A model generated the notes under the pieces. It saw only the letters and a list, made by a program, of their open reading frames with translations. It was not told the origin of the DNA and did no database searches. Source: Styela clava (Eukaryota). Taken from it: a stretch of 64,000 bases of DNA. Shown one piece after another: positions 867 through 36,377 of this stretch. A program made the translations under genes and the position numbers. The stretch covers positions 5,208,001-5,272,000 of the forward strand of contig NC_135259.1 in NCBI RefSeq assembly GCF_964204865.1, read 5' to 3'. Within the stretch, counting starts at the first letter, position 1; every line of letters begins with the position of its first letter.

Positions 867-2866
867 TTACAAGTTTGCGGAGTATCTAAATTTTCGTCTC
901 GCTGCTTCGATGTACCTTGCGGGTAGAGATGGGTGTAAAAAAATCCATAAGTATAAAATTTCTTTTTTAGAATCACAAGGCTTGTTAGTACGCAGCTGTG
1001 CTACTTCAATTAGTCCAATTTTTCTGGCAAAATTTCTTGAAGTTGGATGATCACAAACACCACACCACATGGGTTGTTTGTAAACTCCTGATAATTGCAA
1101 ACGTCTGCGTGCTGCTTCCATCAGCAGTTGAATTCCTTTATCGGCAAACATGGTGCCGATACCCCCTCCTCTGCATTCATCATCAATAACTAGATAATCG
1201 CCATAAATGATTTTCATTCCAAATTCATCCGCCAAATCATACATTTTACCGACATAAGTCTCCATTTCCCACTCATCGTGTCTAAATTATATTGTTGCAG
1301 ATATTACTACCGATTTTATTGGTCTTTGGAGAAAATAAAAATAATATTGATAAAAAAAATTTTTTTTATATTCTGGAGAGCCATTAGACTGAGCATTCAC
1401 TGCTTACGTTTAAAGAAAATATTAAAAGGAGTGTTTAGTTGTTTTTAATTCCAAGTCTATTTTTGTTATGACATACACAAATATCCAAGAATACAGTGCG
1501 AGCTGATTACATTAACGTCATATGAGACTTTAAAAAAATGTTATCAATCGCGAATTGAAAAATTTCGAGTATGTGTGGCGATAATAAAAGATGAATATAA
1601 TTTCTATTTTTTTTGTTGTTCTCACGTATCCATACTTTTGATGTCTTTTCCATCCTTCTCCATCGATATCAGCAAAACGACTGAAAGCTTTCTTTGCCAA
1701 ATCTTCATCTTCCTCCATTGAGCATGCTGTCGCTCCAACTATTTTGACTTTGTCAGCTTTCCTCGTTTTAATAAGTGCTAGAATTCCCCGCCCGTCTTTA
1801 AATATAGCTGGATATAGATATTCATAATACACAGCAAGAAATTTTCGTCTAATATCCGGATCAGGGTTTGTGTAAATATATAGAGGATCATTTTGAAAAG
1901 CTCGTTGACATATTTTGAAACTTGCCAACCAGTCAGTTTCATTACCATCAGATAATTCAATCCACATGCTAAAAAACAAGATAGCAATGCTTAAATATAT
2001 GCAAAACGAATACTTTACCCAAGTTTCCCTAAAATCACCTCCTGAACAAAGCTGAAACTGTGGAACGGCGACAGTAACTTATCAGTACAGGTACTGGGAC
2101 CCGGTCTGTCCTAGGTTTACCAGGTCCTTTGACGATGATGATTCATACGTCCCAATGGTACTCAACCCTTTTTCTCTCGTGGCCCAATTTTGTTACACAA
2201 ACAATTCTGTGGCCCATTAACTTATTCATGTAAGGGAAAAACTACAAGAAAAACAAAACATTTCTCTTTGTAAAGATAGACACTTCCACTTTAATAATTA
2301 AAATGAGAATTACCACTCTGTAGAAAAAACCGCATTATCGTTCAGTGCCACCACCTTATCTAAAACCTTCCGACTATCGCTGAGCAGGAGATCCCCTAAT
2401 TCCCTAATTGCGATCACGGAACCGCAACAAGGTGGCAATTTTTGAATTTGATGATGTAATAACACAAAATTTTAAAGTGTTAAAACGAATCCCAAGCCTT
2501 CTAACGACAACAACAATCCTTAACCACTGGAATTTAACGAGAAAAAAAAAAATACTAATCAAGGATACTAACAACAACAATTTAACAAAACACGATCCAT
2601 AGGTCCACTTGATGTACAACGAATATGTCGCTCAAATATTTAAAATAAGGCATGAAAAATCATGTTTTTCAGATCAAATCCATTCTGCATTGTCACTTTA
2701 TATAACATTGCGCCTTTCACACTTTTCAATGTATAATTAATTAAGACAAGTTCGGTTTATCCCGTGGTCACAAAAATGCTAAATAAACATTTCCGACAAT
2801 GCTACACAAATAAATACTTACTTTACTGATTGATACTTACCTTTCTGTATCTTTTGAGGACGTCAT
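867..2866 (-). CDS. GNAT-family N-acyltransferase type A, 257 aa; exons 2866-2841, 1968-1636, 1281-867
   Basis: Spliced read MTSSKDTES|MWIELSDG...FKICQRAFQNDP...RHQK|HDEWEMETY...VIDDECRGGGIGT...CDHPTSRNFARKIGLIEV...RRKFRYSANL*. GT-AG introns, both phase 2, total 774 nt. Contains acetyl-CoA-binding motif A (R-x-x-G-x-G). Confidence 0.85.
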
Positions 2867-3560
2867 TTCAAATATTTTCGTTAGTAGTAGCTGATCAGTT
2901 GTAAAGACGCGTAAATATGAGTACTCGTTACACAATATCCGTGTGCGACAAAGTTGCAAGGCGTACAATTGTTTAGAGACCGACTGCAGTACGCGACTGG
3001 CAAAAACGTTTTATTGAGTTCAGATTTGGATATTGATATATGAAGCATTTCCGTTACGTAAGGTCTGAACAAAAACAGAAAATTCCAATGGATTTTTAAT
3101 ATTATTCCAACACTGACACCACCATTTTATCCCGTTCGTTAGCTTATGTAGGAAAAGACGGAAATAATATGTGTCCGTATAAAGTTTCAAGACAAATGAT
3201 TTGAATGACTTTTGCTAACGTGTAGCATAGTCCGGGTGATTAGATTAAATACAGAAAATCACAGCTAAGGTGCCCGAGTTCGAGTTGCTGTGTAACTGCC
3301 ACGCACCGCAACATGTCGTTGCGTGTCAACTTAAGAAAAGAAATCAAATATATTTTGAATAGTTTACTTTATGTCAATCAAAATTCCCTTGCATAATTCT
3401 AATTGTTGTATAAATCAAAAAATTATATAATCAGCGCTTTTGTCAACTGAAAACTGATTTCGCTTAAGGCTTGATTTTGTGTGACCATGTATTAAAAACA
3501 TTTTTCTGTATTGTATTGTATTGATGGGGATGTTCGGCAGTTACCAAGATGTACAGCGGG

Positions 3561-7190: not shown

Positions 7191-7197
7191 AACAGAA

Positions 7198-7304
7198 AGT
7201 GATTTTAAAGAAGAAATTTCGAACTTTTTTTCCTACACCCATCTCTACCTGCAAGGTATATTGAGGCAGCAAAGCGAAAATTTAGATGCCCTGCACATTT
7301 GTAA
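7198..7304 (+). pseudogene. 3' fragment of A-type GNAT gene (…FLHPSLPARYIEAAKRKFRCPAHL*)
   Basis: Near-identical to the type A C-terminus (FLHPSLPARYIEAARRKFRYSANL). Frameshifted at ~7228, and no upstream coding exons found. Confidence 0.8.
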
Positions 7305-7689
7305 CAATCCGATGTACTTGAAGACCTGTTAATTCAAGTCTGTAGACAGAATAACTATACTTCCGTCTGATACTTCCGTTGGCAGTACTGGACATCAAGT
7401 CATTGGACTGGATCCGGTAATGTCATTCTGACTCGTGAAAGTAAAAAAAAAAAAAAAAGTGAATTGGCTTTTGTAAGTTGACCATCAATGGTTCAGTTTA
7501 TATATATGTGAGTAAACCGGTAGAGCAATGACCACATTTAGATATCATCAGTCAAGATATCTGGAAGCATAGTCCGTTTAAAATAGTTTCGACAGACATA
7601 GCGCTAATTTTGTTGTAAAAATAAAGAGGGAATTCGAACGATATAAATAATATAGCGTAAGTGATTTACCTAGTTAATATGAATAAGTA

Positions 7690-11157: not shown

Positions 11158-12270
11158 ATGGCACACAAAATTGTAACTCGAGAGTCCGAATTTAGGTATG
11201 GCTAAATAAGCTCTGAGGAATTTGTTCTACAAAACTCGTTAGAAACAATTTATAAATTTCATCGAAAATATGAAATTATTTACATCTATTTTAAATAAAT
11301 GGGATCAGTATTAACTTAATAGTAAACTAGCACATGAAGATCAAATTCAGTTCATGTTTTAGTTTAGTAATTTATCTACCTCAGAATGTGGATTGAATTG
11401 TCTGATGGAAAAGAAAGCGATTGGGATACATCTTTTAAAATATGTCAAAGAGCGTTTCAAAATGATTCGTTCTATATGTATACTCATCCAGATGCGGAAA
11501 TACGACGGAAATTTTTAGCAGTGTACTACAATGACACATATCTTGGACATTTGAAAGAGGGTTATGGATTGTTATCTTTACTTAAAGTGAAAGAAGGCAA
11601 TGAAATAAAAATAATTGGTGCGATAGCTGGTTCATACATTTCAGGAAAAGAACTCAGCAAAGAAGACGATGATCGCTTGTCTCAGATCGATAAGGAAAGT
11701 TGGGAAAGGTATAAAAGGTAAGAACGTTTTTATTTTAAATTATACAATTTGAGGATTTTTTACAATTCTGCAGATTCTTACTCAAAATATTATGTTAGTT
11801 TCTTAGAATAGGATTTTACCTTCCCTAATTCAATAAATATTTCATTCAGGCACGCGGAATGGGAGGAACAATCATACGAAAACGAATTCGGAGAATTGGG
11901 TGAAAAATTAGGGGTTACTGTTATTTATGGAATTTTTCACGCTATTGATGACGGATATAGAGGAAAAGGAATAGGATCAAAATTTTTACTGAAAGCAATG
12001 CAAATGCAAAGTGATGAAGTAATGAGACGCGAAAAATTAGCAGGAATACCTAATTCAAAAATGCCTTTTTCCTACGCTATTTCTGACCATCCAAAATCTA
12101 GAAATTTTTGTAAAAAGATCGGCATGATTGAATTGGCTCAAGTGAGATCTTACCAACCAGCTGATTTATGCAAAGAGCTTTCGTATATGTGGATTTTTGT
12201 TCTTCCATCTTTGCCTTTAAGTTATATCAATGCTGCCAAAAAAATTTTTGTTCTGCCAGCAAACCTGTGA
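11158..12270 (+). CDS. GNAT-family N-acyltransferase type B copy 1, 263 aa; exons 11158-11195, 11385-11717, 11850-12270
   Basis: MAHKIVTRESEFR|MWIELSDG...ERYKR|HAEWEEQ...AIDDGYRGKGIGS...SDHPKSRNFCKKIG...VLPANL*. Canonical phase-2 introns, 792 nt, open frame. Confidence 0.87.
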
Positions 12271-12469: not shown

Positions 12470-13460
12470 CTCTGATTTGAGAATCAATGCCATAATCGCA
12501 GGATTTCATCTTAAATGTGTGTCTTTCATCTCTATATACACGACAGTTAATTAGAAAATATTCCATTGTCTCCTAAAAAAAAAAAAAAATGAGTAAAAAA
12601 TGGCTTGTTGCTTAGTATGATACATCTTGGTAACTGCCGAACATTCCCATCAGTCAAATACAACAGAGAAAAATGTTTTTAATACCTGGTCACACAAAAT
12701 CAAGCCTTAAACGAAATCAATTTTTTGAGTTGACAAAAGCGCTGAATATATAATATTTTAAATTATACAACAATTAGAAATATGCGAGAGAATTTCGATT
12801 GACATATAGAATACTATTTGAATTATATTTAACTTATTTTCTTAATTTGACACGCCACGGCATGTTGTGATGCATAGCAGACAAACGGCGACTCGAACCA
12901 GGGCACATTAGCAGTGGTTTTTCATATTGAATTCAATCACGCCTGACTATTCCATATGTTAATAAAAGTCATTCAAATCATTTGATTTGAAACTTCATAC
13001 ATTACTTACGCAAACCACGAAGTTTTTTCGTCTTATACTACACAAGCTAACACAGGGGATCAAATAGTGTTGTCGGTGTTGGAATAATTTTAAAAATTCA
13101 TTGGCATTTTCTGTTTTTGTTCAAACCTTGCGTAACGGAAATGCCTCATTTATCAATATCCAAACCTAAACCCAATAAAACGTTTTTTCCAGTCGCGTTC
13201 TGAAGTCGGTCTCTAAACAATTGTACGCGTTGCTACATTTTTTGCACAAGAATATACTGTATCGAGTACTGATATTTACTTGTTTTTACTACTGATCAGT
13301 TACTACTAACGGAGATATTAGGAATGACATCGTCAAAAAATACGAAGAGGTAAAGTAAGTAATTATTTGTGTAGCATTGTCGAAAATATTTATTCAGCAT
13401 TTTTGTAAGCATGGGATAAACCAATCTTGTCTTAATTATACATCGAAAAGTGTGACATAC
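12470..13460 (+). repeat. Inverted copy of gene A upstream region and exon 1 (exon at 13324-13349, MTSSKNTK-); second copy in unit 2 (exon 22465-22490)
   Basis: Reverse complement of ~2700-3555 joined to ~5690-5840 without the hAT insert. ATGACATCGTCAAAAAATACGAAGAG|GTAAAG. Confidence 0.8.
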
Positions 13461-13610
13461 GCATTGTTATATCCCAAACGCGGCCTCATCATCTGTGGCC
13501 TGTTTCGCATTTGGCATCTGCTGGAGGTTAAATCAAAAACGCATTTGGTGTTGTCTAATCATAAAAATGTTTTGACATAGAAAAATGAAAATCGAATGCG
13601 ATATCTATTA

Positions 13611-14422
13611 GCTCAGGTTGGCTTATGCATGATAACTAAATATTAATGTTATGACCTGACATTATAAATCCCGCCTAAACAGTATTACAAAAAAAGATGT
13701 CTCTATGTCAGAAAATTTAGTAATTACCCTTCTCACATTTGGTAATAAATCAACCTGCAGTGATTTGTAAACTGTAAACATGAGTTTGAAAAAAAGCTGA
13801 CCAATTCAAACAGATTTTTAACTGGATATAGGAGAGTAGAGGGTTGATGGTAATTGAACTGAGAATTAGCATTCACATACTTTTGATGTCTTCTTCAACC
13901 TTCTTCGTCGATATCAGCAAAACGACTTTCTCCATCAAAACTTCATCTTCCTCCATTGAGCATGCTGTCGCTCCAACTATTTTGATTTTGTCAGCTTTCC
14001 TCGTTTTAATGAGTGGGCTCAGGTTGGCTTATGCATGATAACTAAATATTAATGTTATGACCTGACATTATAAATCCCGCCTAAACAGTATTACAAAAAA
14101 AGATGTCTCTATGTCAGAAAATTTAGTAATTACCCTCCTCACATTTGGTAATAAATCAACCTGCAGTGATTTGTAAACTGTAAACATGAGTTTGAAAAAA
14201 AGCTGACCAATTCAAACAGATTTTTAACTGGATATAGGAGAGTAGAGGGTTGATGGTAATTGAACTGAGAATTAGCATTCACATACTTTTGATGTCTTCT
14301 TCAACCTTCTTCGTCGATATCAGCAAAACGACTTTCTCCATCAAAACTTCATCTTCCTCCATTGAGCATGCTGTCGCTCCAACTATTTTGATTTTGTCAG
14401 CTTTCCTCGTTTTAATGAGTGC
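13611..14422 (+). repeat. 406-bp direct tandem duplication specific to unit 1 (13611-14016 / 14017-14422)
   Basis: GCTCAGGTTGGCTTATGCAT recurs at 13611 and 14017; unit 2 has a single copy. Confidence 0.9.
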
Positions 14423-14612
14423 TAGAAATCCGCGGCCTTATTTAAATATTGCTGGATATAGATATTCATAACACACAGCAAGAAATTTTTGTCTAATATT
14501 TGGATCAGGATGTGTTTAAATGTATAAAGGGTCATTATGAAAAGCTCGTTAGCATGTTTGAAAACTCGCCAACCAGTCCCGTTCATTTCCTTCAAATAAT
14601 TCAATTCACATG
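14287..14612 (-). pseudogene. A-type GNAT pseudo-exon 2 (unit 1); partial duplicate at ~13880-14015
   Basis: Acceptor TTTCAG|C ATG TGA, so the Trp codon has become a stop. Further stops and an indel follow. No exon 3. Confidence 0.85.
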
Positions 14613-14741
14613 CTGAAAAAAATAAAATAGCAATGCTTAAATATATACCGTGAAGGCCAAGTCGAAATATTTTACCCACAATAGCTCCAAAATCATATCC
14701 TGGACAAAGCTAGGATTGCGGAATAGCCACTGTAATTTACC

Positions 14742-14872
14742 AGTACCGGTACCGGTACCGGTACCACCCGGACTGTACCAGCTTTGGTCTGAGACCGATA
14801 ATGATTCATGCTTCTAGTACCACCCGGACTGTACCAGCTTTGGTCTGAGACCGATAATGATTCATGCTTCTA
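14742..14872. repeat. (CCGGTA)n palindromic microsatellite followed by a 56-bp tandem duplication
   Basis: AGTACCGGTACCGGTACCGGTACC, then GTACCACCCGGACTG...CTTCTA repeated at 14761 and 14817. Confidence 0.85.
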
Positions 14873-15724
14873 GTCTCGATGTGAATCAAATGATTGAATA
14901 ATCCACAAGTGTAATATCAAGTCTTTCACCGTACCGTATCATACCGTACTCCTTTTCCAAAAACTTTCAGACATTTGCTGAGCACGAAATCCGCTGCTTG
15001 CGTTTATGGAATCGCTGCACGGTGCGCAATTTTTAATTTTCATGGCGTCATCACACAAAACTTCGTAGGGAAAAACGGATCTCATAGAGCCCAAAGGAAT
15101 TTCAAAAATTAATTAAAGAAATAGCATTCTAGCGACAACAACAATCTTCAGCCACTAACAATTTCAAAGCTATTTGTACAGTACTTGAAAAGAAAAGCAA
15201 TGTTTTCACAAACAAGAAGAAAAGAAGAAGAAGAATACCAAATATACCAACAGCAACAACAAAAATTCGACATAACAATCTATAGGTCCGATTTGTATCC
15301 AAGTGTCTAACAAACATGTCGCAAAAATATACTTTTATATTAAAGTGAAGAAATGAAAAAGCATGTTTTCTCGGATAACGAATCCATTTTGCATTGTCAC
15401 CTCGGGATATAATATTGTGAAAATTGTGATTTCAATTGCATTATGAGTTATATGCAACGGCAATCGTTCAGAAATCGTTAACATATCGTAAATCTTCTCG
15501 TCATGTTTACTTTACTCGTAGTTTTCGTATTCGTGCAATTCCAAATAAAAATTAAATCGCAATGCCCAATTACGCTTGAATCAGCGAGTTATTTTAGAGG
15601 TTTTGGTCTTCGTTTATAATGCTTAGGCGTCTATTGCACGTATAAAATTATTATTCTTTTTGGTTGTGCCTTCGTATTCCTATTATTCGTGTTCGAACAA
15701 TCAAAATTATTTTATTTAATTCAG

Positions 15725-16655
15725 AATGTGGATTGAATTATCAGAACGCAAGGAAAGTGATTGGAGAAAATGTTTTAAAATATGTCAGAGAGCATTTCAA
15801 AATGATCCTTTCTACACTTACACACACCCGGATCCAGAAATTCGGCGAGAATTTTTGAAAGTCTATTTTGACTATTTATATCCAGCTATTTTTCAAGATG
15901 GCAAAGGTATATTAGTTGTAATAAAAGCTGAAGACGAGGAAGGAATCAAAATAATTGGTGGAATGTCAGTTACAATGTATCAGGATGAGGAATTAGAAAA
16001 TGATCACACAGCTTTACTAGCAGTTGATAGAAACGGTTGGATGAAACATTCAAGGTAATACTTACTACTTATTTGATAAAACTTTACATTTAATGTGTTC
16101 AATGTTTTCAGTGCTCCAGTGCTCAATTTCGGCCAAAGGTGTTTGATATAGTACTTGTTCATCCCTCACATCACTGTCTGGAATACCATAGAACAATTGT
16201 ATTATTACCTATGATCCATTTGTTATATTTATAGACGTGATGACTGGGAATATAAAACCTATTACTATAAATTACAAGAATTGGCAGACAAATTAGGTAC
16301 AAACCTTATGCCTGGCGTGTTTCAAATAGTGGATGATGGCTACAGAGGAAAAGGAATTGGATCAAAATTCGTCATGCAAGCGGTGCAGATGATGAGTGAC
16401 GAAGTCGTAAAAAGAAAGCGTCTCGCTGGAATAGCAAACCCAAAACCTCCCCTGGCTCATTGCATCTGTGATCATGAAAGGTCTAGGAATTTCACGAAGA
16501 AAAGTGGATTCATAGAAGTGGCTCAATTACGTACAAATAACGTTGGAGTTCTAGGCAAAGATACATCCCATATATGGATATTTTTACTTCCACCTGAGGA
16601 TCCGAGTTGGATTTATGAAGCCAGAAAAATGTTTGCTCATTCATCGAATCTGTAA
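15725..16655 (+). CDS. GNAT type C copy 1, exons 2-3 (15725-16054, 16235-16655); native exon 1 deleted, candidate captured exon 1 at 13324-13349
   Basis: MWIELSERKES...KHSR|RDDWEYKTY...IVDDGYRGKGIGS...CDHERSRNFTKKSG...AHSSNL*. Open frame with intact splice sites. Confidence 0.72.
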
Positions 16656-18235: not shown

Positions 18236-18579
18236 TCAAAGGACGGATCCAGCCGGAGTAGCTTGGTCTTCTGCTACCGTTATCTTGTCGTGCATTTCAA
18301 TTTTAGTAAAATGTGTTGATTTGGAAGAACATCTTGACGTTCTCTGTGAAGAACATTGACTATCTTTTGTTCTCCGAATCTTTTTGTAAACCGCGTCAAC
18401 CATGTCCGAATATAGAATAGGATTAAGAGCGCTGTTTATGGGCAAAAGAACGATTGCTGCCACAGCGTATGCTGTATCTTGAATATTCACTCCAGCCAGC
18501 TTGCAGAAGGACATTATGCAAATTGGGACCCAACAACAGAAATCAGTGATGATGAGACGAAGTATTTTTTTTTGCATTG
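18236..18579 (-). pseudogene. Duplicated terminal exon (TM6-TM7-tail) of the LDLa GPCR, frame intact
   Basis: MQKKILRLIITDFCCWVPI...LPINSALNPILYS...AGSVL*. The acceptor TTTTCAG is retained, but no upstream exons exist in the unit. Confidence 0.85.
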
Positions 18580-18684
18580 CTGAAAAATAAAACAAATTTA
18601 TATAAAAAATTGATAATAATAATAATTCCAATAAGGAAAATCAACCCAGAAACAAATGAAATTAAGGTGTGGGTGGTTATTGCC

Positions 18685-20305: not shown

Positions 20306-21414
20306 ATGGCACACAAAATTGTAACTCGAGAGTCCGAATTTAGGTATGGCTAAATAAGCTCTGAGGAATTTGTTCTACGAAACTCGTTAGAAACAATTTA
20401 TAAATCTCATCGAAAATATGAAATTATTTACATCTATTTTAAATAAATGGGATCAGTATTAAATTAATAGTATACTAGCACATGAAGATCAAATACAGTT
20501 CATGTTTTAGTTTAGTAATTCATCTACCTCAGAATGTGGATTGAATTGTCTGATGGAAAAGAAAACGATTGGGATACATCTTTTAAAATATGTCAAAGAG
20601 CTTTTCAAAATGATTCGTTCTATATGTATACTCATCCAGATGCGGAAATACGACGGAAATTTTTAGCGGTGTACTACAATGACACATATCTTGGACATTT
20701 GAAAGAGGGTTATGGATTGTTATCTTTACTTAAAGTGAAAGAAGGCAATGAAATAAAAATAATTGGTGCGATAGCTGGTTCATACATTACAGGAAAAGAA
20801 CTCAGCAAAGAAGACGATGATCGCTTGTCTCAGATCGATAAGGAAAGTTGGGAAAGGTATAAAAGGTAAGAACGTTTTTATTTTAAATTATACAATTTGA
20901 GGTTTACAATTTTGCAGATTCTTACTCAAAATATTATGTTAGTTTCTTAGAATAAGATTTTACCTTCCCTAATTCAATAAATATTTCATTCAGGCACGCG
21001 GAATGGGAGGAACAATCATACGAAAACGAATTTGGAGAATTGGGTGAAAAATTAGGGGTTACTGTTATTTATGGAATTTTTCACGCTATTGATGACGGAT
21101 ATAGAGGAAAAGGAATAGGATCAAAATTTTTACTGAAAGCAATGCAAATGCAAAGTGATGAAGTAATGAGACGCGAAAAATTAGCAGGAATACCTAATAC
21201 AAAAATGCCTTTTTCCTACGCTATTTCTGACCATCCAAAATCTAGAAACTTTTGTAAAAAGATCGGCATGATTGAATTGGCTCAAGTGAGATCGTACCAA
21301 CCAGCTGATTTATGCAAAGAGCTTTCGTATATGTGGATTTTTGTTCTTCCATCTTTGCCTTCAAGTTATATCAATGCTGCCAAAAAAATTTTTGTTCTGC
21401 CAGCAAACCTGTGA
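20306..21414 (+). CDS. GNAT type B copy 2, 263 aa; exons 20306-20343, 20533-20865, 20994-21414
   Basis: Same structure as B1 with 4 aa differences. Ends VLPANL*. Confidence 0.87.
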
Positions 21415-23021
21415 ATGTCTCGATAAATAATACAATGTCCTAATGGATTATTCAAAGCGTTGGGACAAAATAAGTGTGTGTGTGTGTGGTATGAAAATAT
21501 ATGGAGCTTTTAGCAATTTGAGTCTTTTGCGCTAGACAATTCAAAACCGAATCTTGGTGAACTTCACAAAATCAAGTATAGTGAAAGGAAACGACGACAG
21601 TCGCTTGAAATAGCTCTGATTTGAGAATCAATGCCATAATCGCAGGATTTCATCTTAAATGTGTGTCTTTCATCTCTATATACACGACAGTTCATTAGAA
21701 AATATTCCATTGTCTCGAAAAAAAAAAAAATGAGTAAAACATGGCTTGTTGCTTAGTATGATACATCTTGGTAACTGCCGAACATCCCCATCAGTTAAAT
21801 ACAATAGAGAAAAATGTTTTTAATACCTGGTCACACAAAATCAAGCCTTAAACGAAATCAATTTTTTGAGTTGACAAAAGCGCTGATTATATAATATTTT
21901 AAATTATACAACAATTAGAAGTATGCGAGAGAATTTCGATTGACATATAGAATACTATTTGAATTATATTTGATTTATTTTCTTAATTTGACACGCCACG
22001 ACATGTTGTGATGCATGGCAGACAAACGGCGACTCGAACCAGGGCACATTAGCAGTGGTTTTTCATATTGAATTCAATCACGCCTGACTATTCCATATGT
22101 TAATAAAAGTCATTCAAATCATTTGATTTGAAACTTCATACATTACTTACGCAAACCACGAAGTTTTTTCGTCTTATACTACACAAGCTAACACAGGGGA
22201 TCAAATAGTGTTGTCGGTGTTGGAATAACTTTAAAAATTCATTGGCATTTTCTGTTTTTGTTCAAACCTTGCGTAACGGAAATGCCTCATTTATCAATAT
22301 CCAAACCTAAACCCAATAAAACGTTTTTTCCAGTCGCGTTCTGAAGTCGGTCTCTAAACAATTGTACGCGTTGCTACATTTTTTGCACAAGAATATACTG
22401 TATCGAGTACTGATATTTACTTGTTTTTACTACTGATCAGTTACTACTAACGGAGATATTAGGAATGACATCGTCAAAAAATACGAAGAGGTAAAGTAAG
22501 TAATTATTTGTGTAGCATTGTCGAAAATATTTATTCAGCATTTTTGTAAGCATGGGATAAACCAATCTTGTCTTAATTATACATCGAAAAGTGTGACATA
22601 CGCATTGTTATATCCCAAACGCGGCCTCATCATCTGTGGCCTGTTTCGCATTTGGCATCTGCTGGAGGTTAAATCAAAAACGCATTTGGTGTTGTCTAAT
22701 CATAAAAATGTTTTGACATGGAAAAATGAAAATCGAATGCGATATCTATTAGCTCAGGTTGGCTTATGCATGATAACTAAATATTATTGTTATGGCCTGA
22801 CATTATAAATCCCGCCTAAACAGTATTACAAAAAAAGATGTCTCTATGTCAGAAAATTTAGTAATTACCCTCCTCACATTTGGTAATAAATCAACCTGCA
22901 GTGATTTGTAAACTGTAAACATGAGTTTGAAAAAAAGCTGACCAATTCAAACAGATTTTTAACTGGATATAGGAGAGTAGAGGGTTGATGGTAATTGAAC
23001 TGAGAATTAGCATTCACATAC

Positions 23022-23347
23022 TTTTGATGTCTTCTTCAACCTTCTTCGTCGATATCAGCAAAACGACTTTCTCCATCAAAACTTCATCTTCCTCCATTGA
23101 GCATGCTGTCGCTCCAACTATTTTGATTTTGTCAGCTTTCCTCGTTTTAATGAGTGCTGGAAATCCGCGCCCTTATTTAAATATTGCTGGATATAGATAT
23201 TCATAACACACAGCAAGAAATTTTTGTCTAATATTTGGATCAGGATGTGTTTAAATGTATAAAGGGTCATTATGAAAAGCTCGTTAGCATGTTTGAAAAC
23301 TCGCCAACCAGTCCCGTTCATTACCATCAAATAACTCAATTCACATG
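23022..23347 (-). pseudogene. A-type GNAT pseudo-exon 2 (unit 2)
   Basis: Same ATG-TGA lesion as the unit 1 copy. No exon 1 or exon 3 on this strand. Confidence 0.85.
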
Positions 23348-24472
23348 CTGAAAAAAATAAAAGAGCAATGCTTAAATATATACCGTGAAGGCCAAGTCGA
23401 AATATTTTACCCACAATAGCTCCAAAGTCATATCCTGGACAAAGCTGGGATTGCGGAATAGCCACTGTAATTTACCAGTACCGGTACCGGTACCGGTACC
23501 ACCCGGACTGTACCAGCTTTGGTCTGAGACCGATAATGATTCATGCTTCTAGTCTCGATGTAAATCAAATGATTGAATAATCCACAAGTGTAATATCAAG
23601 TCTTTCACCGTACCGTATCATACCGTACTCCTTTTCCAAAAACTTTCAGACATTTGCTGAGCACGAAATCCGCTGCTTGCGTTTATGGAATCGCTGCACG
23701 GTGCGCAATTTTTAATTTTCATGGCGTCATCACACAAAACTTCGTAGGGAAAAACGGATCTCATAGAGCCCAAAGGAATTTCAAAAATTAATTAAAGAAA
23801 TAGCATTCTAGCGACAACAACAATCTTCAGCCACTAACAATTTCAAAGCTATTTGTACAGTACTTGAAAAGAAAAGTAATTTTTTCACAAACAAGAAGAA
23901 AAGAAGAAGAAGAATACCAAATATACCAACAGCAACAACAAAAATTCGACACAACAATCTATAGGTCCGATTTGTATCCAAGTGTCTAACAAACATGTCG
24001 CAAAAATATACTTTTATATTAAAGTGAAGAAATGAAGAAGCATGTTTTCTCGGATAACGAATCCATTTTGCATTGTCACCTCGGGATATAATATTGTGAA
24101 AATTGTGAAATTGTGATTTCAATTGCAATATGAGTTATATGCAACGGCAATCGTCCAGAAATCGTTAACATATCGTAAATTCATTTCATTGGAGAACGTG
24201 GGACCGCGGAAAATATACGGTGTAGAAAATAGTCACAAGCTCTTCTCGTCATGTTTACTTTACTCGTATTTTTCGTATTCGTGCAATTCCAAATAAAAAT
24301 TAAATCGCAATGCCCAATTACGCTTGAATCAGCGAGTTATTTTAGAGGTTTTGGTCTTCGTTTATAATGCTTAGGCGTCTATTGCACGTATAAAATTATT
24401 ATTCTTTTTGGTTGTGCCTTCGTATTCCTATTATTCGTGTTCGAACAATCAAAATTATTTTATTTAATTCAG

Positions 24473-25403
24473 AATGTGGATTGAATTATCAGAACGCAAG
24501 GAAAGTGATTGGAGAAAATGTTTTAAAATATGTCAGAGAGCATTTCAAAATGATCCTTTCTACACTTACACACACCCGGATCCAGAAATTCGGCGAGAAT
24601 TTTTGAAAGTCTATTTTGACTATTTATATCCAGCTATTTTTCAAGATGGCAAAGGTATATTAGTTGTAATAAAAGCTGAAGACGAGGAAGGAATCAAAAT
24701 AATTGGTGGAATGTCAGTTACAATGTATCAGGATGAGGAATTAGAAAATGATCACACAGCTTTACTAGCAGTTGATAGAAACGGTTGGATGAAACATTCA
24801 AGGTAATACTTACTACTTATTTGATAAAACTTTACATTTAATGTGTTCAATGTTTTCAGTGCTCCAGTGCTCAATTTCGGCCAAAGGTGTTTGATATAGT
24901 ACTTGTTCATCCCTCACATCACTGTCTGGAATACCATAGAACAATTGTATTATTACCTATGATCCATTTGTTATATTTATAGACGTGATGACTGGGAATA
25001 TAAAACCTATTACTATAAATTACAAGAATTGGCAGACAAATTAGGTACAAACCTTATGCCTGGCGTGTTTCAAATAGTGGATGATGGCTACAGAGGAAAA
25101 GGAATTGGATCAAAATTCGTCATGCAAGCGGTGCAGATGATGAGTGACGAAGTCGTAAAAAGAAAGCGTCTCGCTGGAATAGCAAACCCAAAACCTCCCC
25201 TGGCTCATTGCATCTGTGATCATGAAAGGTCTAGGAATTTCACGAAGAAAAGTGGATTCATAGAAGTGGCTCAATTACGTACAAATAACGTTGGAGTTCT
25301 AGGCAAAGATACATCCCATATATGGATATTTTTACTTCCACCTGAGGATCCGAGTTGGATTTATGAAGCCAGAAAAATGTTTGCTCATTCATCGAATCTG
25401 TAA
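24473..25403 (+). CDS. GNAT type C copy 2, exons 2-3 (24473-24802, 24983-25403); candidate captured exon 1 at 22465-22490
   Basis: Translation is identical to C1. Intact GT-AG sites. Ends AHSSNL*. Confidence 0.72.
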
Positions 25404-26989: not shown

Positions 26990-27333
26990 TCAAAGGACGG
27001 ATCCAGCCGGAGTAGCTTGGTCTTCTGCTACCGTTATCTTGTCGTGCATTTCAATTTTAGTAAAATGTGTTGATTTGGAAGAACCTCTTTACGTTCTCTG
27101 TGAAGAACATTGACTATCTTTTGTTCTCCGAATCTTTTTGTAAACCGCGTCAACCATGTCCGAATATAGAATAGGATTAAGAGCACTGTTTATGGGCAAA
27201 AGAACGATTGCTGCCACAGCGTATGCTGTATCTTGAATATTCACTCCCGCCAGCTTGCAGAAGGACATTATGCAAATTGGGACCCAACAACAGAAATCAG
27301 TGATGATGAGACGAAGTATTTTTCTTTGCATTG
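26990..27333 (-). pseudogene. Duplicated GPCR terminal exon with premature stop at 27089
   Basis: …KDSQCSSQRT*, from a TCA>TAA change. The acceptor is intact. Confidence 0.85.
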
Positions 27334-29107
27334 CTGAAAAATAAAACAAATTTATATAAAAAATTGATAATAATAATAATTCCGATAAGGAAAATCAACC
27401 CAGAAACAAATGAAATTAAGGTGTGGGTGGTTATTGCCAAGGCTGTAGATTCGGAGAAAGTTTACATCCAACTCTGGACTATGGGTTGTTACATTTTTCC
27501 TATTCCTACTCCAGCTCTGAACTTAGGGAAAATTAAATCGAAAAGCGAAAACTTTGGCGTATGCAGGCCTTCTCTAATAGACTGTTGGGAACGCATCATA
27601 AATTTCATGCTTTTTGCTGATTGCTCTTGTTACCAATGCCAGTCTGAAATTCTTAATTCGGTGAATTCAGAATAATGAGTTAGAAAACAACGATCCCAGT
27701 TCCGACTCCGAATCCAATGGAAAAATGCCAAAATTTCAGCCCCGTCTCGACTCCACAGCTCAGCTTGCTAGAAACACCCAGCCTTGAGCTCATTAGAACG
27801 TATGGAAGATATATATATAGAAGTCACAGCTGCGCTGTGTTAAGTTAGAAAAGTAGGTGTTTGAGGCTCTTTTATGTCTCAGATAGCCGTAGTATTTCGT
27901 AGTAGTGCTTTTATTTTACCGCAAGTCGGCGCAAAGGCGAGTTACGATGAACACAATTAAATTAATATGGCAAGACATTTTAAATGCGCGTATTGTCCAT
28001 GGATTGAGTATCTTAGGCAACAGAAAATATTATTATCCGTTGGAAAAGTAGGCTGCTTAATTAAGTCGGCATTATTGCGGCGCGATAGAGTGATACAGAT
28101 TCGAAAAAGCGAATAATTTGCCTTTGGCCGGATTTTTACTTGGTAATATTTGAATGTTGGGTTTGTTAATGGACGCAGTGAACAGTTTAGTGATTAAAAA
28201 ATTACACTATCGTTTTTTGTTTTTTATAACAGTTCTCAAACCCGGTATTTAATGCCTATGTCATATATTTAATGTCAAAGAAATGTCATCGTCAAGAATG
28301 CAGAGATTTTAGAACTCATTTTCAATTGATTGAAATTAGGCCCAATCCAAATGAAATCAATGGATTCATTTCAGATTTAATAATATAAATTTAAAATATT
28401 GAACAAGTCTACAATACAGAATCTTTAGATCCAAATGGCCCCAAAGTGTTTTTATGTTGCCAATGCAGAAAATTGGTTTAAGGGATTTTTTGAAAAAATA
28501 TCTGAAATATTTTGGTTGAACATTGATTCCAAAAATATTGGATCTCCAATTTCTATGTCCCCCCGTTTTTTAAATGATACTGCTGAATCTTTCCTTAGTT
28601 TTAAGGACATACTTCGATGAATTTAACAGAATTCCCCATTGTGCGTCAGGGTCTGTCCGAATGTGCCCCACTCGTGGGATACAGTGGGAGACAAACGTTA
28701 TTATTTTCAAAGCATTTTGGCGGTGAGATGTATGTCGCGAGGGAATTTCTTAGTCGCTGAATAAAAACCACATTTACTCCTCTCCGCATTTGCACCGCAA
28801 AATGAAATGAAAGTACAGAATATATGACTCAAAATATGCAGATGAAAAAAAAGTGTCTCAACCTTCCACACTTTCCCCTACTCAGTTTCTAGCTACCGGA
28901 ATATTCCATTATTTTCCTAATGAGGAAGATGTCTTATTTAAATGCACATAAAAAGATGTAAGATAAAATTTTGATGACCCTGTGGATTCTCACAACCTGT
29001 GATTGTGACCACACTAACGGTCAATTGCTCTGGTATATACAGACTAGTATGCAATCTATACAAAATGAGTCTTTAAACCACGCTTTCGTCTTCAATTAAC
29101 GCCTTGT

Positions 29108-30177
29108 ATGGCACACAAAATTGTAACTCGAGAGTCCGAATTTAGGTATGGCTATTTAAAGCTCTGAGGACTTTGTACTACAAAACTCGTTAGAAACAAT
29201 TTATAAATCTCATCGAAAATATGAAATTATTTACATCTATTTTAAATAAATGGGATTAGTATTAACTTAATAGTAAACTAGCACATGAAGATCAAATTCA
29301 GTTCATGTTTTAGTTTAGTAATTTATCTACCTCAGAACGTGGATTGAATTGTCTGATGGAAAAGAAAAACGATTGGGATACATCTTTTAAAATATGTCAA
29401 AGAGCGTTTCAAAATGATTCGTTCTATATGTATACTCATCCAGATGCGGAAATACGACGGAAATTTCTAGCGATGTACTACAATGACACATATCTTGGAC
29501 ATTTGAAAGAGGGTTATGGATTGTTATCTTTACTTAAAGTGAAAGAAGGCAATGAAATAAAAATAATTGGTGGGATAGCTGGTTCATACATTTCAGGAAA
29601 AGAACTCAGCAAAGAAGACGATGATCGCTTGTCTCAGATCGATAAGGAAAGTTGGGAAAGGTATAAAAGTTAAGAACGTTTTTATTTTAAATTATACAAT
29701 TTGAGGTTTACAATTTTGCAGATTCTTACTGAAAATATTATGTTAGTTTCTTAGAATCAGATTTTACCTTCCCTAATTCAATAAATATTTCATTCAGGCA
29801 CGCGGAATGTGAGGAACAATCATACGAAAACGAATTCGGAGAATTGGGTGAAAAATTAGGGGTTACTGTTATTTATGGAATTTTTCACGCTATTGATGAC
29901 AGATATAGAGGAAAAGGAATAGGATCAAAATTTTTACTGAAAGCAATGCAAATGCAAAGTGATGAAGTAATGAGACGCGAAAAATATTTCTCACCATCCA
30001 AAATCTAGAAACTTTTGTAAAAAGATCGGCATGATTGAATTGGCTCAAGTAAGATCTTACCAACCAGCTGATTTATGCAAAGAGCTTTCGTATATGTGGA
30101 TTTTTGTTCTTCCATCTTTGCCTTCAAGTTATATCAATGCTGTCAAAAAATTTTTTGTTCTGCCAGCAAACCTGTGA
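29108..30177 (+). pseudogene. GNAT type B copy 3, pseudogene
   Basis: +1 A frameshift at ~29365, exon-2 donor AG|GT changed to AG|TT at ~29670, and a ~41-bp deletion in exon 3 at ~29985. Confidence 0.88.
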
Positions 30178-30242
30178 ATGTCTCGATAAATATTACAATG
30201 GCCTAATGAATTATTCAAAGCGTTGGGACAAAATAGTGTGTT

Positions 30243-30680
30243 AGGCCACGAGAGAAAAAGGGTTGAGTACCACTGGGACGTATGAATCATCATCGTCAAT
30301 AGACCTGGTAAACCTAGGACAGACGGGGTCCCAGTACCTGCACTTATAAGTTACGGTCGCCGTTCTACAGTTTCAGCTTTGTTCAGGAGGTAATTTTAGG
30401 GAAATTTGGGTAAAGTATTCGTTTTGCATATATTTGAGCATTGCTATCTTGTTTTTTAGCATGTGGATTGAATTATCTGATGGTAATGAAACTGACTGGT
30501 TGGCAAGTTTCAAAATATGTCAACGAGCTTTTCAAAATGATCCTCTATATATTTACACACACCCTGATCCGGATATTAGACGAAAATACTTGCATCTTTA
30601 AAAAGTATGTCAAAGAGCGCTTCAAAACGATCTGTTCTATTTGTATACCCATCCAGATACAAAAATACGATGTAAATGAT
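30243..30680 (+). pseudogene. Inverted fragment of gene A (intron 1 end plus start of exon 2) fused to a second, diverged exon-2 fragment
   Basis: 30243-30587 is nearly the reverse complement of ~1843-2185. It is followed by ASLKVCQRALQNDLFYLYTHPDTKIRCK* at ~30592-30678. An A-type exon 1 copy lies at 30858 with a weak donor (GTATAA). Confidence 0.8.
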
Positions 30681-31914
30681 TCATATATCAATATCTAAAT
30701 CTGAACCAAATAAAACGTTTTTGCCAGTCGCGTACTGCAGTCGGTTCTAAGCAATCTTACGCGTTGCTACATTTTTCGCACAAGAATATACTCTATCGAG
30801 CACTGATATTTATTCGTTTTTACTACTGATCAGTTACTACTAACGGAGATATTAGGAATGGCATCGTCAAAAAATACGAAGAGGTATAATAATTAATTAT
30901 TTGTGTAGCATTGTCGAAAATATTTATTCAGCATTTTTGTAAGCTTGGGATAAACCAATCTTGTCTTAATTATACATTGAAAAGTGTGACATACGCATTG
31001 TTATATCCCAAATGCGGCCTCATCATCTGTGGCCTGTTTCGCATTTGGCATCTGCTGGAGGTTAAATCAAAAATGCATTTGGTGTTGTCTAATCATAAAA
31101 ATCTTTTGACATATTGTTACATCACTAATTTCACTGAATTGACTACTAATGTTATGACTAGCGAAGTTTTTGGTCCGGAATATATGCTGACAACATAATA
31201 CATGGGCATCATAGAAAAATGAAAATCGAATGCGATATCTATTAGCTTAGGTTGGCTTATGCATGATAACTAAATATTAATGTTATGGCCTGACATTATA
31301 AATCCCGCCGGCTGTTTTTTTTAAACCAGCCTAAACAGGATTACAAAAAAAGATGTCTCTTTGTCAGAAAATTTAGTAAAAACCCTCCTCACATTTGGTA
31401 ATAAATCATCCTGCAGTGATTTGTAAATTGTTAAAATGAGTTTGAAAAAAACCAATTCAAACAGATTTTTAACTGGATATAGAAGTATAGTATATAAGTA
31501 TAAGTTTTTTTTCGACTCCATAATCAGCATAACAATACATTTGACAGATAAAAACAAATAAATAAAAACTGATTACGAAATCAGGGGAGCAAACAAAACC
31601 TTAGATAAGGTTTATAACGTACAAAATATAAGATGGAAGGTTTTGCCAAGAGGAAGTGGTACGTGTTTACTCACCTAAAATTATTATGTTATTTCACACA
31701 CGCTCATATGCACCCACCAGCCACACACACACACAACCACTGAGAAGTTATTTAAGTAAGAATAAAACGCGATAAATTTAGGGTATACTATACAGTAAAC
31801 TAGAAAAGAATATTATCTGCCACACCATGTTGATATTTTTGTAATGGTTGACATTGCCAAATTGATAAGAATAAAGGGTTGATGGGATTTGAACTAAGAA
31901 TTAGCATTCACATA

Positions 31915-32362
31915 TTTCGTTACCAACATTATTGCAATACTGTACGGTACAGTACCGGTACCGTAGTAAGACAGCGTAAGGAAAAAATCGTAGCAAAGTA
32001 CCGTAAGGACTTCGTTACGAACCATCGACGTTCGATGGCACGTGATCAAAAAGAAGAGGAGTGTCGGCTATGCGTCCGCAGAACGTTCGGTGACGTCGTA
32101 GCGAACAAAAACAAATCTCACAGAGCTAACAGAAATATTTGAAATAAATAAATGTAATAGCCTTCTGGAGAAAAATTTCGTCTTTAACCAGTAAAAATTT
32201 TGAAGCAATCGGTCCAGTAATGAAAGAGAAAAGCGGATTTTTAGATTTTCCACTAGATGTTCAAAAGTGTCAAAGAACAACAACAACAAGACCAACATAA
32301 TATTGAAACGATCGTTATGTCCACTACGTGTCCAAAAAGTATTAGGTTGTTGTCAAGGGAAT
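31915..32362. mobile_element. ~450-bp MITE-like insertion at the pseudo-exon 2 donor (unit 3 only)
   Basis: Absent in units 1 and 2. Flanked by duplicated CATA. Ends ATTTCGTTACCAACA / TGTTGTCAAGGGAAT form an imperfect (11/15) inverted repeat. Confidence 0.5.
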
Positions 32363-32367
32363 CATAC

Positions 32368-33647
32368 TGTTGATGTCTTCTCCAACCTTCTTCGTCGATA
32401 TCGGCAAAACGACCATAAGTTTTTTCCATCAAAATTTCATCTTCCTCCATTGAGCATGCTGTCGCTCCAACTATTTTGTCCGCGCCCGTCTTTGAATATT
32501 GCTGGATATAGATATTCATAACACACAGCAAGAAATTTTCGTCTAATATTCGTACCAGGATGTGTTTAAATGTATAAAGGGTCATTATGAAAAGCTCGTT
32601 GGCATATTTGAAAACTCGCCAACCTGTCCCGTTCATTACCATCAGATAATTCAACTCACATGCTGAAAAAACAAAAGGACAATGCTTAAATATATACCGT
32701 GAAGACCAGGACGAAATATTTTACCCACAATTACCCCAAAATCATATCCTGAACGAAGCTGGAATTGTGGAACAGACACCGTAATTTACCAGTACCGGTA
32801 CCACGCGGACTGTCCCAGCTTTCTCAGGGTCTGGGACCGATAATGATTCATGCTTCTAGTCTCGATGTAAATCAAATGATTGAATGATCCACAGGTGTGA
32901 TATCAAGTCTTTCACCGTACCGTAGCCTACTTGCAGTCTACCTTACATTTCCAAAAACCTTCAGACATTCGCTGAGCACGAAATCAGCTGATTGCGATTG
33001 TGGAATCGCTGCACGGTGCGCAATTTTTAATTTTCATGGCGTCATCACACAAAATTTCGTAGGGAAAAACGGATCCCATAGAGCCCAAAGAAATTTTAGA
33101 AATTAATAAAAGAAATAGCATTCTAGCGACAACAACAATCTTCAGCCATTGACAATTTAAAAGCAATTGGTACGATACTTGAAAAGAAAAGCAATTTTTT
33201 CACAAACAAGAAGAAAAGAAGAAGAATAATACCAAATATACCAACAGCAACAACAACAATTCGACATACAATCTATAAGTCCGATTTGTATCCAAGTGTC
33301 TAACAAACATGTCGCAAAAATATACTTTTATATTAAAGTGAAGAAATGAAAAAGCATGTTTCTCGGATAACGAATCCATTTTGCATTGTCACCTCGGCAT
33401 ATAACAATCCGCTTGCCACATTTATTGAAGCATACTTTAGACAAGATTAGTTTATCCCGTGGTCACGTAAATGCTTCGACACGAAATTTACATAAGGACC
33501 GTTTTGTTATTTCACCATAAATTGCGCCGAAAAATCAAACGTCGTAATTGCCATATGAATATTTTCGACAGGACGGTTATGCTATACAAATAATTACTAA
33601 CGTTACGTTGCTGGTACTTACCTCTCTGCATCATTTAACAATGTTAT
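32368..33647 (-). pseudogene. A-type GNAT pseudogene (exon 1 33647-33622, exon 2 32662-32368)
   Basis: Start ATG changed to ATA, ATG-TGA stop in exon 2, internal deletion, no exon 3. Lies head-to-head with C3. Confidence 0.85.
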
Positions 33648-34044
33648 TTCAAATATTTTCGTTCGCGTTAACGGATCAGTAGTAAATAAATGTAAGTGCC
33701 AGTACTCGTGACAGTATATTATTGTTCGACAATAAGTTGCCAATCTTAATTTTTTTTAGATGCAACCGATAGAAGCACGCGACTAGCATAGGAGGTAAGG
33801 TTTAAACAATAATATAAAAATAAAAGATTCAAATGGCTTTTTGTGTAATTCAAAGTCTATTCACCACAGCTGTTGACGCGCATGAGTTAGTATTAGTCAA
33901 CAGTGCCTGTTCCTCTGGACAATTCTCTGAGTTAATCATTAAAGCAGAGTTTTGAATGGTGCGTATTTGACATCATTTGTAAATCCAGCAGCGTGTGTGA
34001 TAGCCTAACAAATTTATGAGTTGACTCAAACGTGCAATTTCGAA

Positions 34045-36377
34045 ATGGATACAAATGAGGAAAATACCAAGTAAGTGAAATAGCACAGAAAATATAATAA
34101 TTGGTTAGACCGGACTTTGTGAGAGAAACCATTTGAAGGATTTCGACCGTCGCTACCAACGCTCTGAAACGAATTCTAAGACTCACCTGTACGAATATCT
34201 TAGGGTTAGTTAAATTCCAAAATTGGACCATGTAGTGATTTGTAGCGAGTGAAATACGTTGTGTTTATCTGTTTGCACAATAATATTAATCTACGAATGA
34301 TTTATCATTAGCTGACAATAAGCCACCAGACGATCAATTGTAAAATTATTTTACATTAAGTTAAACAAGTTGAATTGATTTTGTTCTGGAAAAACATTTT
34401 CTTTTGCCTTCACTTTATGTATGTTCAGGCAGGCTAACATGTTTTTAATTCAGGATTTTGAATAAAATATCAAATACTGATATATTTATTGGATTCCAAA
34501 ACCATTTTATCAGAATTTCAAAGTTATAATTAATAACATCATAATTTTGTGTAAATGAGGTAAATTTCTATATATAACTGAGAATAAACATGAGAGCACA
34601 GCTTAAATTCATAGACACGGAGGTCACCCATCAGTCGGTACTGTTACCGAGATTGATGAAATGCAAAGTGGTGCCACGTGGTGGCGCAATGTACCAGAAC
34701 AAGCCAGGTTTGGGATGTAAAACCATGCTCACAGGAATCAGAGTAAATTCAAAATTAAATGAAAGTAACATTTTTTCAGTGACTTTTAGTAGTAAATTCA
34801 AAACTCATTCGGACTACTAGTTGAAAGGAAAAACGATTTATCATAATAAAAACGTCAAAACCAAAACTCACATCTTGGCTACCCATAAACATGTAATTAA
34901 CAAGTTGAAAAATCAACGAAAAGTAATCTTTCTAAAGAAACCTAAAAAGATTTAACATTGAAATATTGAGCACCTGTAGAATGATATGTAACACAAATTA
35001 TACACTGTAAGAAAGATAATTTTAGATTTATTCTTTTATTCGAGTTCTTTGATACGAAGATTAGTTTTCATTAGTGAGAAATTGTGATTTCAATTGCATT
35101 ATGAGTTATATGCAACGGCAATCGTCCAGAAATCGTTAACATATCGTAAATTCATTTCAATGGAGAACGTGGGTCCGCGGAAAATACACGATGTAGAAAA
35201 TAGTCACAAGCTCTTCCCGTCATGTTTACTTTACTCGTATTTTTTGTATTCGTGCAATTCCAAATAAAAATTAAATCGCAATGCCCAATTACGCTTGAAT
35301 CAGCGAGTTATTTTAGAGATTTTGGTCTTCGTTTATAATGCTTAGGCGTCTATTGCACGTATCAAATTATTATTCTTTTTGGTTGTGCCTCCGTATTCCT
35401 ATTATTCGTGTTCGAACAATCAAAAATATTTTATTTAATTCAGAATGTGGATGGAATTATCAGATGGCAAGGAAAGTGATTGGAGAGATTGTTTTAAAAT
35501 ATGTCAGCGAGCATTTCAAAATGATCCTTTCTACACTTACACACACCCGGATCCAGCAATTCGGCGAGAATTTTTGAAAGTCTATTTTGACTATTTATAC
35601 CCAGCTATTTTACAAGATGGCAAAGGTATATTAGTTGTAATAAAAGCTGAAGACGAGGAAGGAATCAAAATAATTGGTGGAATGTCAGTTACAATGTATC
35701 AGGATGAGGAATTAGAAAATGATCACACAGCTTTACTAGCAGTTGATAGAAACGGTTGGATGAAACATTTGAGGTAATACTTACTACCTATTTGATAAAA
35801 CTTTACATTTAATGTGTTCAATGTTTTCAGTGCTTCATTTTTTTTCAATTTCGGCCAAAGGTTTTTGATATAGTACTTGTTCATCCCTCACATCACTGTC
35901 TGGAATACCATAGAACAATTGTATTATTACCTATGATGCATTTGTTATATTTATAGACGTGATGACTGGGAATGTGAAACCTATTACGAAAAATTACAAG
36001 AATTGGCAGACAAATTAGGTACAAACCTTATGCCTGGCGTGTTTCAAATAGTGGATGATGGCTACAGAGGAAAAGGAATTGGATCAAAATTCGTCATGCA
36101 AGCGGTGCAGATGATGAGTGACGAAGTCGTAAAAAGAAAGCGTCTCGCTGGAATAGCAAAACCTAAACCTCCCCTGGCTTATTGCATCTGTGATCATGAA
36201 AGGTCTAGGAATTTTACGAAGAAAAGTGGGTTCATAGAAGTGGCTCAATTACGTACAAACAACGTTGGAGTTCTAGGCAAAGATACATCCCATATATGGA
36301 TATTTTTACTTCCACCTGAGGATCCGAGTTGGATTTATGAAGCCAGAAAAATGTTTGTTTATCCATCTAATCTGTAA
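34045..36377 (+). CDS. GNAT type C copy 3, complete, 258 aa; exons 34045-34070, 35444-35773, 35957-36377
   Basis: ATGGATACAAATGAGGAAAATACCAA|GTAAGT is a 26-nt phase-2 exon, the same size as A exon 1. It gives MDTNEENTK|MWMELSDG...VYPSNL*, 777 nt. Confidence 0.85.

Follow-up and report, generated by a model that had tools for sequence, protein, structure and literature searches.

A 64,000-nucleotide stretch of the genome of the ascidian Styela clava (C13:5,208,001-5,272,000, within a 377-Mb assembly; hereafter the window) carries a cluster of genes for a lineage-restricted family of GNAT-fold proteins that are probably peroxisomal amine-acylating enzymes. The letter N is absent from the window, and the intact genes found there belong to three paralog types, A, B (2 copies), and C (3 copies). 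Alongside them are a damaged B copy and a number of A-like relics. NCBI models identical to the window proteins exist, every one of them named “uncharacterized protein.” As a whole, the observations are best explained by GNAT N-acyltransferases of ascidian origin that are tagged with a peroxisomal targeting signal type 1 (PTS1), are imported by PEX5, and have kept this signal, a reading that we hold with moderate confidence. The parts of this interpretation that can be tested in silico all held, and to that extent it is supported.

GNAT fold and PTS1-like C-terminal ends

All 20 intact last exons of the family clade (rows of the alignment and the tree), which are 20 to 60% identical to each other, terminate in a PTS1-like tripeptide. 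The ends are -ANL and -AKL (four each), -NKL (three), -SNL and -SML (two each), and single cases of -SKL, -PRL, -SRL, -SHI, and -SSL; the two -SNL rows are C1 and C3, as C2, which is identical to C1, is not a row of the tree. A partial last exon outside these 20 (L015) ends in -SLL. A list of 48 plant PTS1 tripeptides validated by experiment (PMC3427985, Table A1) includes 17 of the 20 ends; the chance that a random tripeptide would be found on it is ~1.4%. Likewise, -ANL, -SNL, -SML, -SSL, and -SLL are listed as PTS1 in another study (PMC9542071), and in zebrafish the PTS1 of Pipox is -SSL and that of HACL1 is -SNL (PMC8919083). The -ANL and -SNL ends of types A, B, and C are noncanonical yet accepted in plants, and -SNL is found in a vertebrate enzyme as well.

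Among the 12 residues before the end, many are basic or nonpolar and few are acidic. Positions -4 to -12 of types A, B, and C contain 2 to 4 basic, 3 to 7 nonpolar, and 0 to 1 acidic residues, which is the kind of pattern, basic and nonpolar upstream of the tripeptide, that was described as enhancing (PMC9542071). The basic residues that the first-pass annotation had noticed before the ends lie at -6 to -10. In the two structural models described below (P0006 and P0012), the last 3 to 4 residues are disordered, with a predicted local distance difference test score (pLDDT) of <50. No pattern of the type 2 targeting signal was found in the N-termini of the family, which are mostly acidic. Apparent last exons of the S. 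clava catalase (L010, C6:1.20 Mb) and HACL1 (L023, C18:10.18 Mb) were located, and they end in -AKM and -SKM, respectively, indicating that S. clava uses PTS1 import.

The window holds only part of a much larger family. Profile searches of the S. clava genome revealed further, diverged paralogs, whose last exons all have a phase-2 intron ahead of an R-x-[DE]-x-W motif. They are located at C13:5.17 Mb (two -SML ends; NCBI P0011 and P0012), at C13:11.45 Mb (-SHI and -SRL), at C10:11.03-11.05 Mb (three -NKL ends and the partial -SLL exon), on C17 (two -AKL ends), on C6 (-AKL), and on C19 (-SSL). As for orthologs without the tripeptide, a possibility raised in the first-pass annotation, the homologs from outside the S. 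clava genome end in -SKL (P0002), -AKL (P0003), and -PRL (P0005). These three proteins are not encoded in this genome, where their best matches have 61%, 43%, and 33% identity, respectively; such low values indicate an origin outside S. clava, presumably in other ascidians. Even with a two-residue insertion ahead of its end, P0002 finishes in -SKL. An E-type outgroup (NCBI P0025-P0027; C3:14.2 Mb and other loci) shares the fold motifs but ends in -NRG, -NRG, and -CTL. When last exons were placed in a maximum-likelihood tree with this outgroup as the root, all the PTS1-like ends fell into one clade with a support of 100/100. The E-type proteins are 332 to 380 amino acids long; their G-x-G loop is intact, and a long insert of low complexity precedes an HS..V.F..KNGF motif. 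Loci of the E-type and of a second subfamily without a PTS1-like end, the D-type, are at C13:14.29 Mb, C1:8.53 Mb, C3:14.18 Mb, C9:9.67 Mb, C13:8.14 Mb, and C1:19.95 Mb (L016-L021).

Types A, B, and C are only 46 to 50% identical to one another, which bears out the earlier description of three strongly diverged paralog types. The ratio of nonsynonymous to synonymous substitution rates (dN/dS), summed exon by exon, is 0.09 to 0.21 between the types, with saturated dS, so that the genes must have been maintained for a long time. Against this background, the codons of the terminal tripeptides of A, B, and C differ by synonymous changes (TTG/CTG for Leu, AAC/AAT for Asn, TCG/TCT for Ser) or by Ala/Ser exchange only, while positions -4 to -6, unlike the last three codons, are free to vary. 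The proposal that the ends vary yet stay within PTS1-like space is in agreement with both this codon pattern and the 17 listed ends.

AlphaFold models of the type C protein P0006 (pLDDT, 74) and of P0012, a paralog with 25 to 29% identity (pLDDT, 86; predicted template modeling score, 0.85), both display GNAT topology. The core order beta1-alpha1-alpha2-beta2-beta3-beta4-alpha3-beta5-alpha4-beta6 is present in both. Both also have a long helical insert (~40 residues) that separates beta-3 from beta-4, and their disordered tail is preceded by an additional C-terminal helix. Hundreds of GNAT chains match the models at Z > 8. The top Protein Data Bank (PDB) match of both is puromycin N-acetyltransferase (PAC; 7K09/7K0A), at a Z of 16.2 for 7K09, with 188 to 191 residues aligned and a root mean square deviation of 2.6 to 3.1. 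It is followed by the C-terminal amine-selecting domain of Ebony (6DYM; Z, 15.4 to 15.8) and by the Drosophila dopamine N-acetyltransferase Dat (5GI5/5GI6; Z, 15.4). Mosquito, polyamine, and agmatine N-acetyltransferases are at Z values of 14 to 15, and generic GNATs at ~12 to 13. The neighbors in the ESM Atlas are fungal and actinobacterial GNAT clusters. The resemblance to PAC-like GNATs and insect-type arylalkylamine N-acyltransferases that had been suggested from motif layout is thus also seen in the fold, with top matches at Z 16.2 and ~15.

The motifs FKICQRAFQND, RGxGIG, and DHxxSRNFxxKxG, on which that suggestion was based, are found in types A, B, and C. The coenzyme A (CoA) loop, R-G-[KG]-G-I-G, is intact in all three types, and its two Gly residues are invariant in the family alignment. 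In the models, the RGKGIG loop lies between beta-4 and alpha-3. By sequence, the loop aligns with the corresponding loop of SAT2. The fold ranking, together with an R-G-x-G-I-G loop at the site where GNATs bind the CoA pyrophosphate, points to proteins that may work like small-molecule amine N-acyltransferases, as judged from their nearest structural neighbors.

At the level of sequence, the family is barely recognizable. The Pfam profile Acetyltransf_1 (PF00583) matches P0006 with a score of 21.0 (cut-off, 20.7), types A and B and the foreign homologs are below the threshold, and a Pfam search with P0012 gave 0 hits. The best E-value in a profile search of PDB sequences was 0.075 (SAT2), in the motif A region only. 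A phmmer search with the type B last exon against 1.84 billion cluster representatives returned 5 proteins, none of them characterized. Since no significant sequence relation was detected, the likeness to PAC and to the insect arylalkylamine N-acyltransferases is stated here as a likeness in how the proteins would work and not as membership in either group. PAC is of a similar length class (about 200 to 250 residues), and its order of motifs (N-terminal AF..DP, G-x-G loop, RN...GF) is similar to that of the family. The two differ in that their identity is only 10 to 17%, with no significant sequence match, and in that the S. clava family has the helical insert between beta-3 and beta-4, intron-bearing animal genes, and a PTS1-like C-terminal extension. 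The insect arylalkylamine, polyamine, and agmatine N-acetyltransferases (Dat, 3TE4/5GI5; AgmNAT, 7CIW) and Ebony match at Z values of 14 to 15.8 over ~190 to 200 residues. These animal GNATs use small amines as acyl acceptors and are often encoded in tandem arrays; however, they are cytosolic, lack a PTS1, and have no detectable sequence relation to the family. Word-indexed searches for wider homologs, with the family and with the E-type outgroup, yielded S. clava proteins only. With no bacterial relative in these searches, a recent horizontal transfer is not supported.

Weighing the import signal

Several points weigh against the peroxisomal reading. In known cases, Asn at position -2 gives weak signals. 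Catalase and HACL1 have Asn at this position in vertebrates (-ANL; -SNL or -SNM), whereas the S. clava catalase and HACL1 have Lys there; the ends with Asn, -ANL and -SNL, may thus be weak in this animal, and A, B, and C are possibly weakly or dually targeted. Taken as a control, S. clava catalase and HACL1 neither support nor refute a tolerance of Asn at -2 by S. clava PEX5. The PTS1 of human catalase is -KANL, a weak signal that needs its Lys at -4; the family has like tripeptides with Asn at -2, but this Lys is absent from its ends. The validated tripeptide list was compiled for plants and does not include -NKL. Because the paralogs share ancestry, their 20 ends do not count as independent observations. 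Constraint appears to be relaxed in recent duplicates, with a dN/dS of 0.69 for A and A2 and 0.52 for C1 and C3 (B1 and B2, 0.19). A long-branched D-type, whose ends were taken from open frames only, is placed inside the clade and has neither a PTS1-like end nor a CoA loop. Finally, sequence matches to every characterized GNAT fall below significance.

Alternatively, the signal may be ancestral and in decay. An -[SA]KL end of a peroxisomal ancestor, like the ends of the foreign homologs and the -AKL paralogs, may have been weakened by a Lys-to-Asn change in the A/B/C lineage, leaving the window enzymes mainly cytosolic or shared with the peroxisome. Asn is at -2 in all A/B/C ends and Lys in the nearest foreign relatives, S. 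clava catalase and HACL1 have kept Lys, and the supporting Lys at -4 on which a catalase-type end depends is missing here. However, Asn and Leu were kept through synonymous codon changes despite saturated dS, and such synonymous-only change across the three lineages argues for continued selection on the end. Moreover, -SNL works in a genuine animal peroxisomal enzyme (PMC8919083), and the residues upstream match the enhancing pattern. On balance, we consider decay unlikely.

Another explanation holds that the proteins are cytosolic GNATs and that the C-terminal pattern is an inherited structural or oligomerization feature with no targeting role. The ends are indeed related by descent, and a conserved Phe 6 to 8 residues from the end indicates that the tail region is partly structural. 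The very last residues behave differently: the final 3 to 4 are modeled as disordered, and changes in the tripeptide are limited to residues accepted by PEX5 while its neighbors vary freely. A foreign homolog retains -SKL in spite of its two-residue insertion, and the outgroup subfamily, which has the same fold, does not have the pattern. A purely structural tail is thus quite improbable. That the proteins are pseudoenzymes or binding proteins, which retained the fold and bind CoA esters or amines with acyl transfer lost, seems very improbable: the CoA loop is degenerate in some distant paralogs (e.g., the C10 and C17 clusters) and P0012 has no Pfam hit, but A, B, and C are under purifying selection and have lost neither the R-G-x-G-I-G loop nor the SRNF..K.GF motif.

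The preferred reading, that of PTS1-tagged amine N-acyltransferases, can be put as a sequence of events. The family would have originated among ascidians, its source being a relative that lacked the signal, and would have grown through tandem duplications accompanied by births and losses of genes; the signal would have been kept while the tripeptide drifted inside the range accepted by PEX5. The enzymes would be soluble, acyl-CoA-dependent proteins of ~250 residues, belonging to a GNAT subgroup that acylates small-molecule amines. They would fold in the cytosol. PEX5 would bind the flexible tripeptide at their C-terminus there and, as the pattern of ends suggests, import the folded protein into the peroxisomal matrix. 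There, judging by the fold neighbors, an acetyl or another acyl group from the CoA esters of beta-oxidation may be transferred to a small amine. This idea of the substrate is speculation.

Gene copies and neighbors in the window

Gene copies were located by open reading frame (ORF) listing and by tblastn with single exons, and splice sites were read off the sequence. The queries were single exons or NCBI proteins returned by the searches. Every copy named in the first-pass annotation was recovered in this way, and the ends reported there, -SANL (A), -PANL (B), -SSNL or -PSNL (C), and -PAHL (a relic at 7.3 kb), were confirmed, with the stops at one aligned position. All introns are in phase 2 with canonical splice sites of the AG|GT type; the junctions are supported by sequence reading and by agreement with the NCBI spliced models P0007, P0008, P0013, and P0014. 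Of the three-exon, phase-2/phase-2 structure that had been ascribed to all types, the phase stands throughout, but the NCBI model of type B has only two coding exons, with its start ATG 1 base past the exon-2 acceptor. An unverified candidate for a B exon 1 lies upstream of each B copy (11158-11195, ~20306, and ~29108). It consists of an ATG and a 12-codon open stretch to AG|GTATGG, in a phase that fits B exon 2; it is dissimilar to exon 1 of A and C, and the NCBI model does not contain it.

The type A gene is at 867-2866 on the minus strand (exon 1, 2841-2866; exon 2, 1636-1968; exon 3, 867-1281 including the stop), ends in -ANL, and is identical to NCBI model P0007. A second A gene, A2, also with an -ANL end, is found directly upstream of the window (L008, C13:5205500-5208000). 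Its SRNF motif is altered to SRKL. In the NCBI isoform P0020, exons 1 and 2 of A are spliced to exon 3 of A2, which suggests read-through splicing. The 7.3-kb relic is an A-like C-terminal piece of ~26 codons on the plus strand (7227-7304), which ends in -AHL and a stop and has no upstream exons.

Self-megablast revealed a tandem array of 3 copies of a ~9.1-kb unit on the plus strand at 9906-38786. In each unit, a B gene or remnant, A-like relics, and a C gene are accompanied by a minus-strand last exon of a rhodopsin-type receptor. Identity is 97 to 98% between units 1 and 2; unit 3 is rearranged and has 93 to 96% identity. A local tandem duplication of 405 bp (13611-14015 and 14017-14421, 99.75% identical) is present in unit 1 only.

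In the first unit, B1 occupies 11385-12270 on the plus strand (exon 2, 11385-11717, with the ATG at 11386; exon 3, 11850-12270; end, -ANL; NCBI model P0008), and C1 is at 13324-16655 on the same strand (A-like exon 1, 13324-13349; exon 2, 15725-16054; exon 3, 16235-16655; end, -SNL; NCBI model P0013). An inverted A-like exon-2 relic lies in intron 1 of C1 (14306-14611, minus strand). The second unit has the same layout, with B2 at 20533-21414 (plus strand; exon 2, 20533-20865; exon 3, 20994-21414; end, -ANL), C2 at 22465-25403 (plus strand; A-like exon 1, 22465-22490; exon 2, 24473-24802; exon 3, 24983-25403; end, -SNL), and an inverted A-like exon-2 relic within the C2 span (23041-23346). The coding sequence of C2 being identical to that of C1, P0013 matches both.

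The third unit contains the broken copy B3 (29362-30177, plus strand), in which the start of exon 2 is lost and exon 3 is in two frames, with a frameshift and ~14 codons missing at 29985, a rearrangement breakpoint; its tail is still -ANL. B3 is followed by an A-like exon-2 piece (30461-30598, plus strand), an A-like exon-1 copy with a spoiled donor (30858-30883, plus strand), and an inverted A-like exon-2 piece (32372-32661, minus strand). The type C3 gene (34045-36377, plus strand; NCBI model P0014) differs in having an exon 1 of its own (34045-34070); exons 2 (35444-35773) and 3 (35957-36377) follow, and the -SNL end comes after Pro. An exon 1 of the C3 type is absent from C1 and C2, and P0013 joins the A-like exon 1 to C exon 2. 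Exon 1 of C1 and C2 thus represents an exon capture that followed the partial inversion of an A copy.

The receptor last exon, one copy per 9.1-kb unit (18236-18631, 27089-27349, and 37962-38357, minus strand), encodes TM6-TM7 and the tail, with an NPxxY-like NPILY and a weak 7tm_1 match. Probably only the third copy is in a complete gene, whose other exons would lie at higher coordinates. Exons of a cytochrome P450 gene are found ~20 kb downstream of the GNAT cluster (57740-60131, minus strand; Pfam p450 E-values, 2e-40 and 1e-20), and the heme-binding FxxGxRxCxG is present. This neighbor is compatible with a xenobiotic or specialized-metabolism neighborhood and is no evidence for one. A reading of the ORF at 48398-48673 as LDLa was dropped, as it had no Pfam hit.

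Precedents and meaning of the family

That the genes exist is already known, since they are annotated (as uncharacterized), and their fold is a common one. GNATs have been reported in plant peroxisome proteomes. BAAT and ACNAT1-2 are animal PTS1-bearing enzymes that conjugate peroxisomal acyl-CoA to glycine and taurine. Theirs is the role proposed here for the S. clava family; however, they have an acyl-CoA thioesterase/alpha-beta-hydrolase fold and are vertebrate families. To our knowledge, the list of animal peroxisomal matrix enzymes, which is short and thought to be largely complete, includes no GNAT acyltransferase.

The clearest precedent for the proposed logic, a peroxisomal GNAT in specialized metabolism, is the Aspergillus siderophore transacylase SidF, which has GNAT motifs and is peroxisomal by virtue of a C-terminal -AKL (bioRxiv 10.1101/2024.08.20.608788). 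It differs in being fungal, in having two domains, and in its substrate, N5-hydroxyornithine. SidF was not among the sequence or fold matches of the family, and we infer that it belongs to a different GNAT branch. As to such enzymes, carnitine acetyltransferase is the only one mentioned in the zebrafish peroxisome inventory (PMC8919083). In the searchable literature on peroxisomal GNATs and on S. clava peroxisomes or N-acetyltransferases, neither an animal peroxisomal GNAT nor this family was found to be described, and SidF was the only peroxisomal GNAT found there, in line with the first-pass annotation, which recognized no such family in animals.

It is tempting to go further and to assume that ascidians have a multigene set of peroxisomal GNAT amine N-acyltransferases of their own, with at least 18 intact loci in S. 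clava, in which the Asn ends of the window genes are weak signals tuned to split the enzymes between cytosol and peroxisome. The set would form a GNAT-type conjugation or specialized-metabolite branch of animal peroxisomal metabolism that the peroxisome inventories of vertebrates, fly, and worm lack. This extended version is offered tentatively.

If the peroxisomal reading is true, a chordate relative would have gained a reaction class new to the peroxisome, the N-acylation of amines with acyl-CoA from beta-oxidation, through a lineage-specific and rapidly duplicating family. The family would also provide a natural PTS1 series on one scaffold (K, R, H, N, M, S, and L at position -2; S, A, P, and N at -3), which would be useful for studying PEX5 specificity, and it would point to unknown acylated amines in ascidians.

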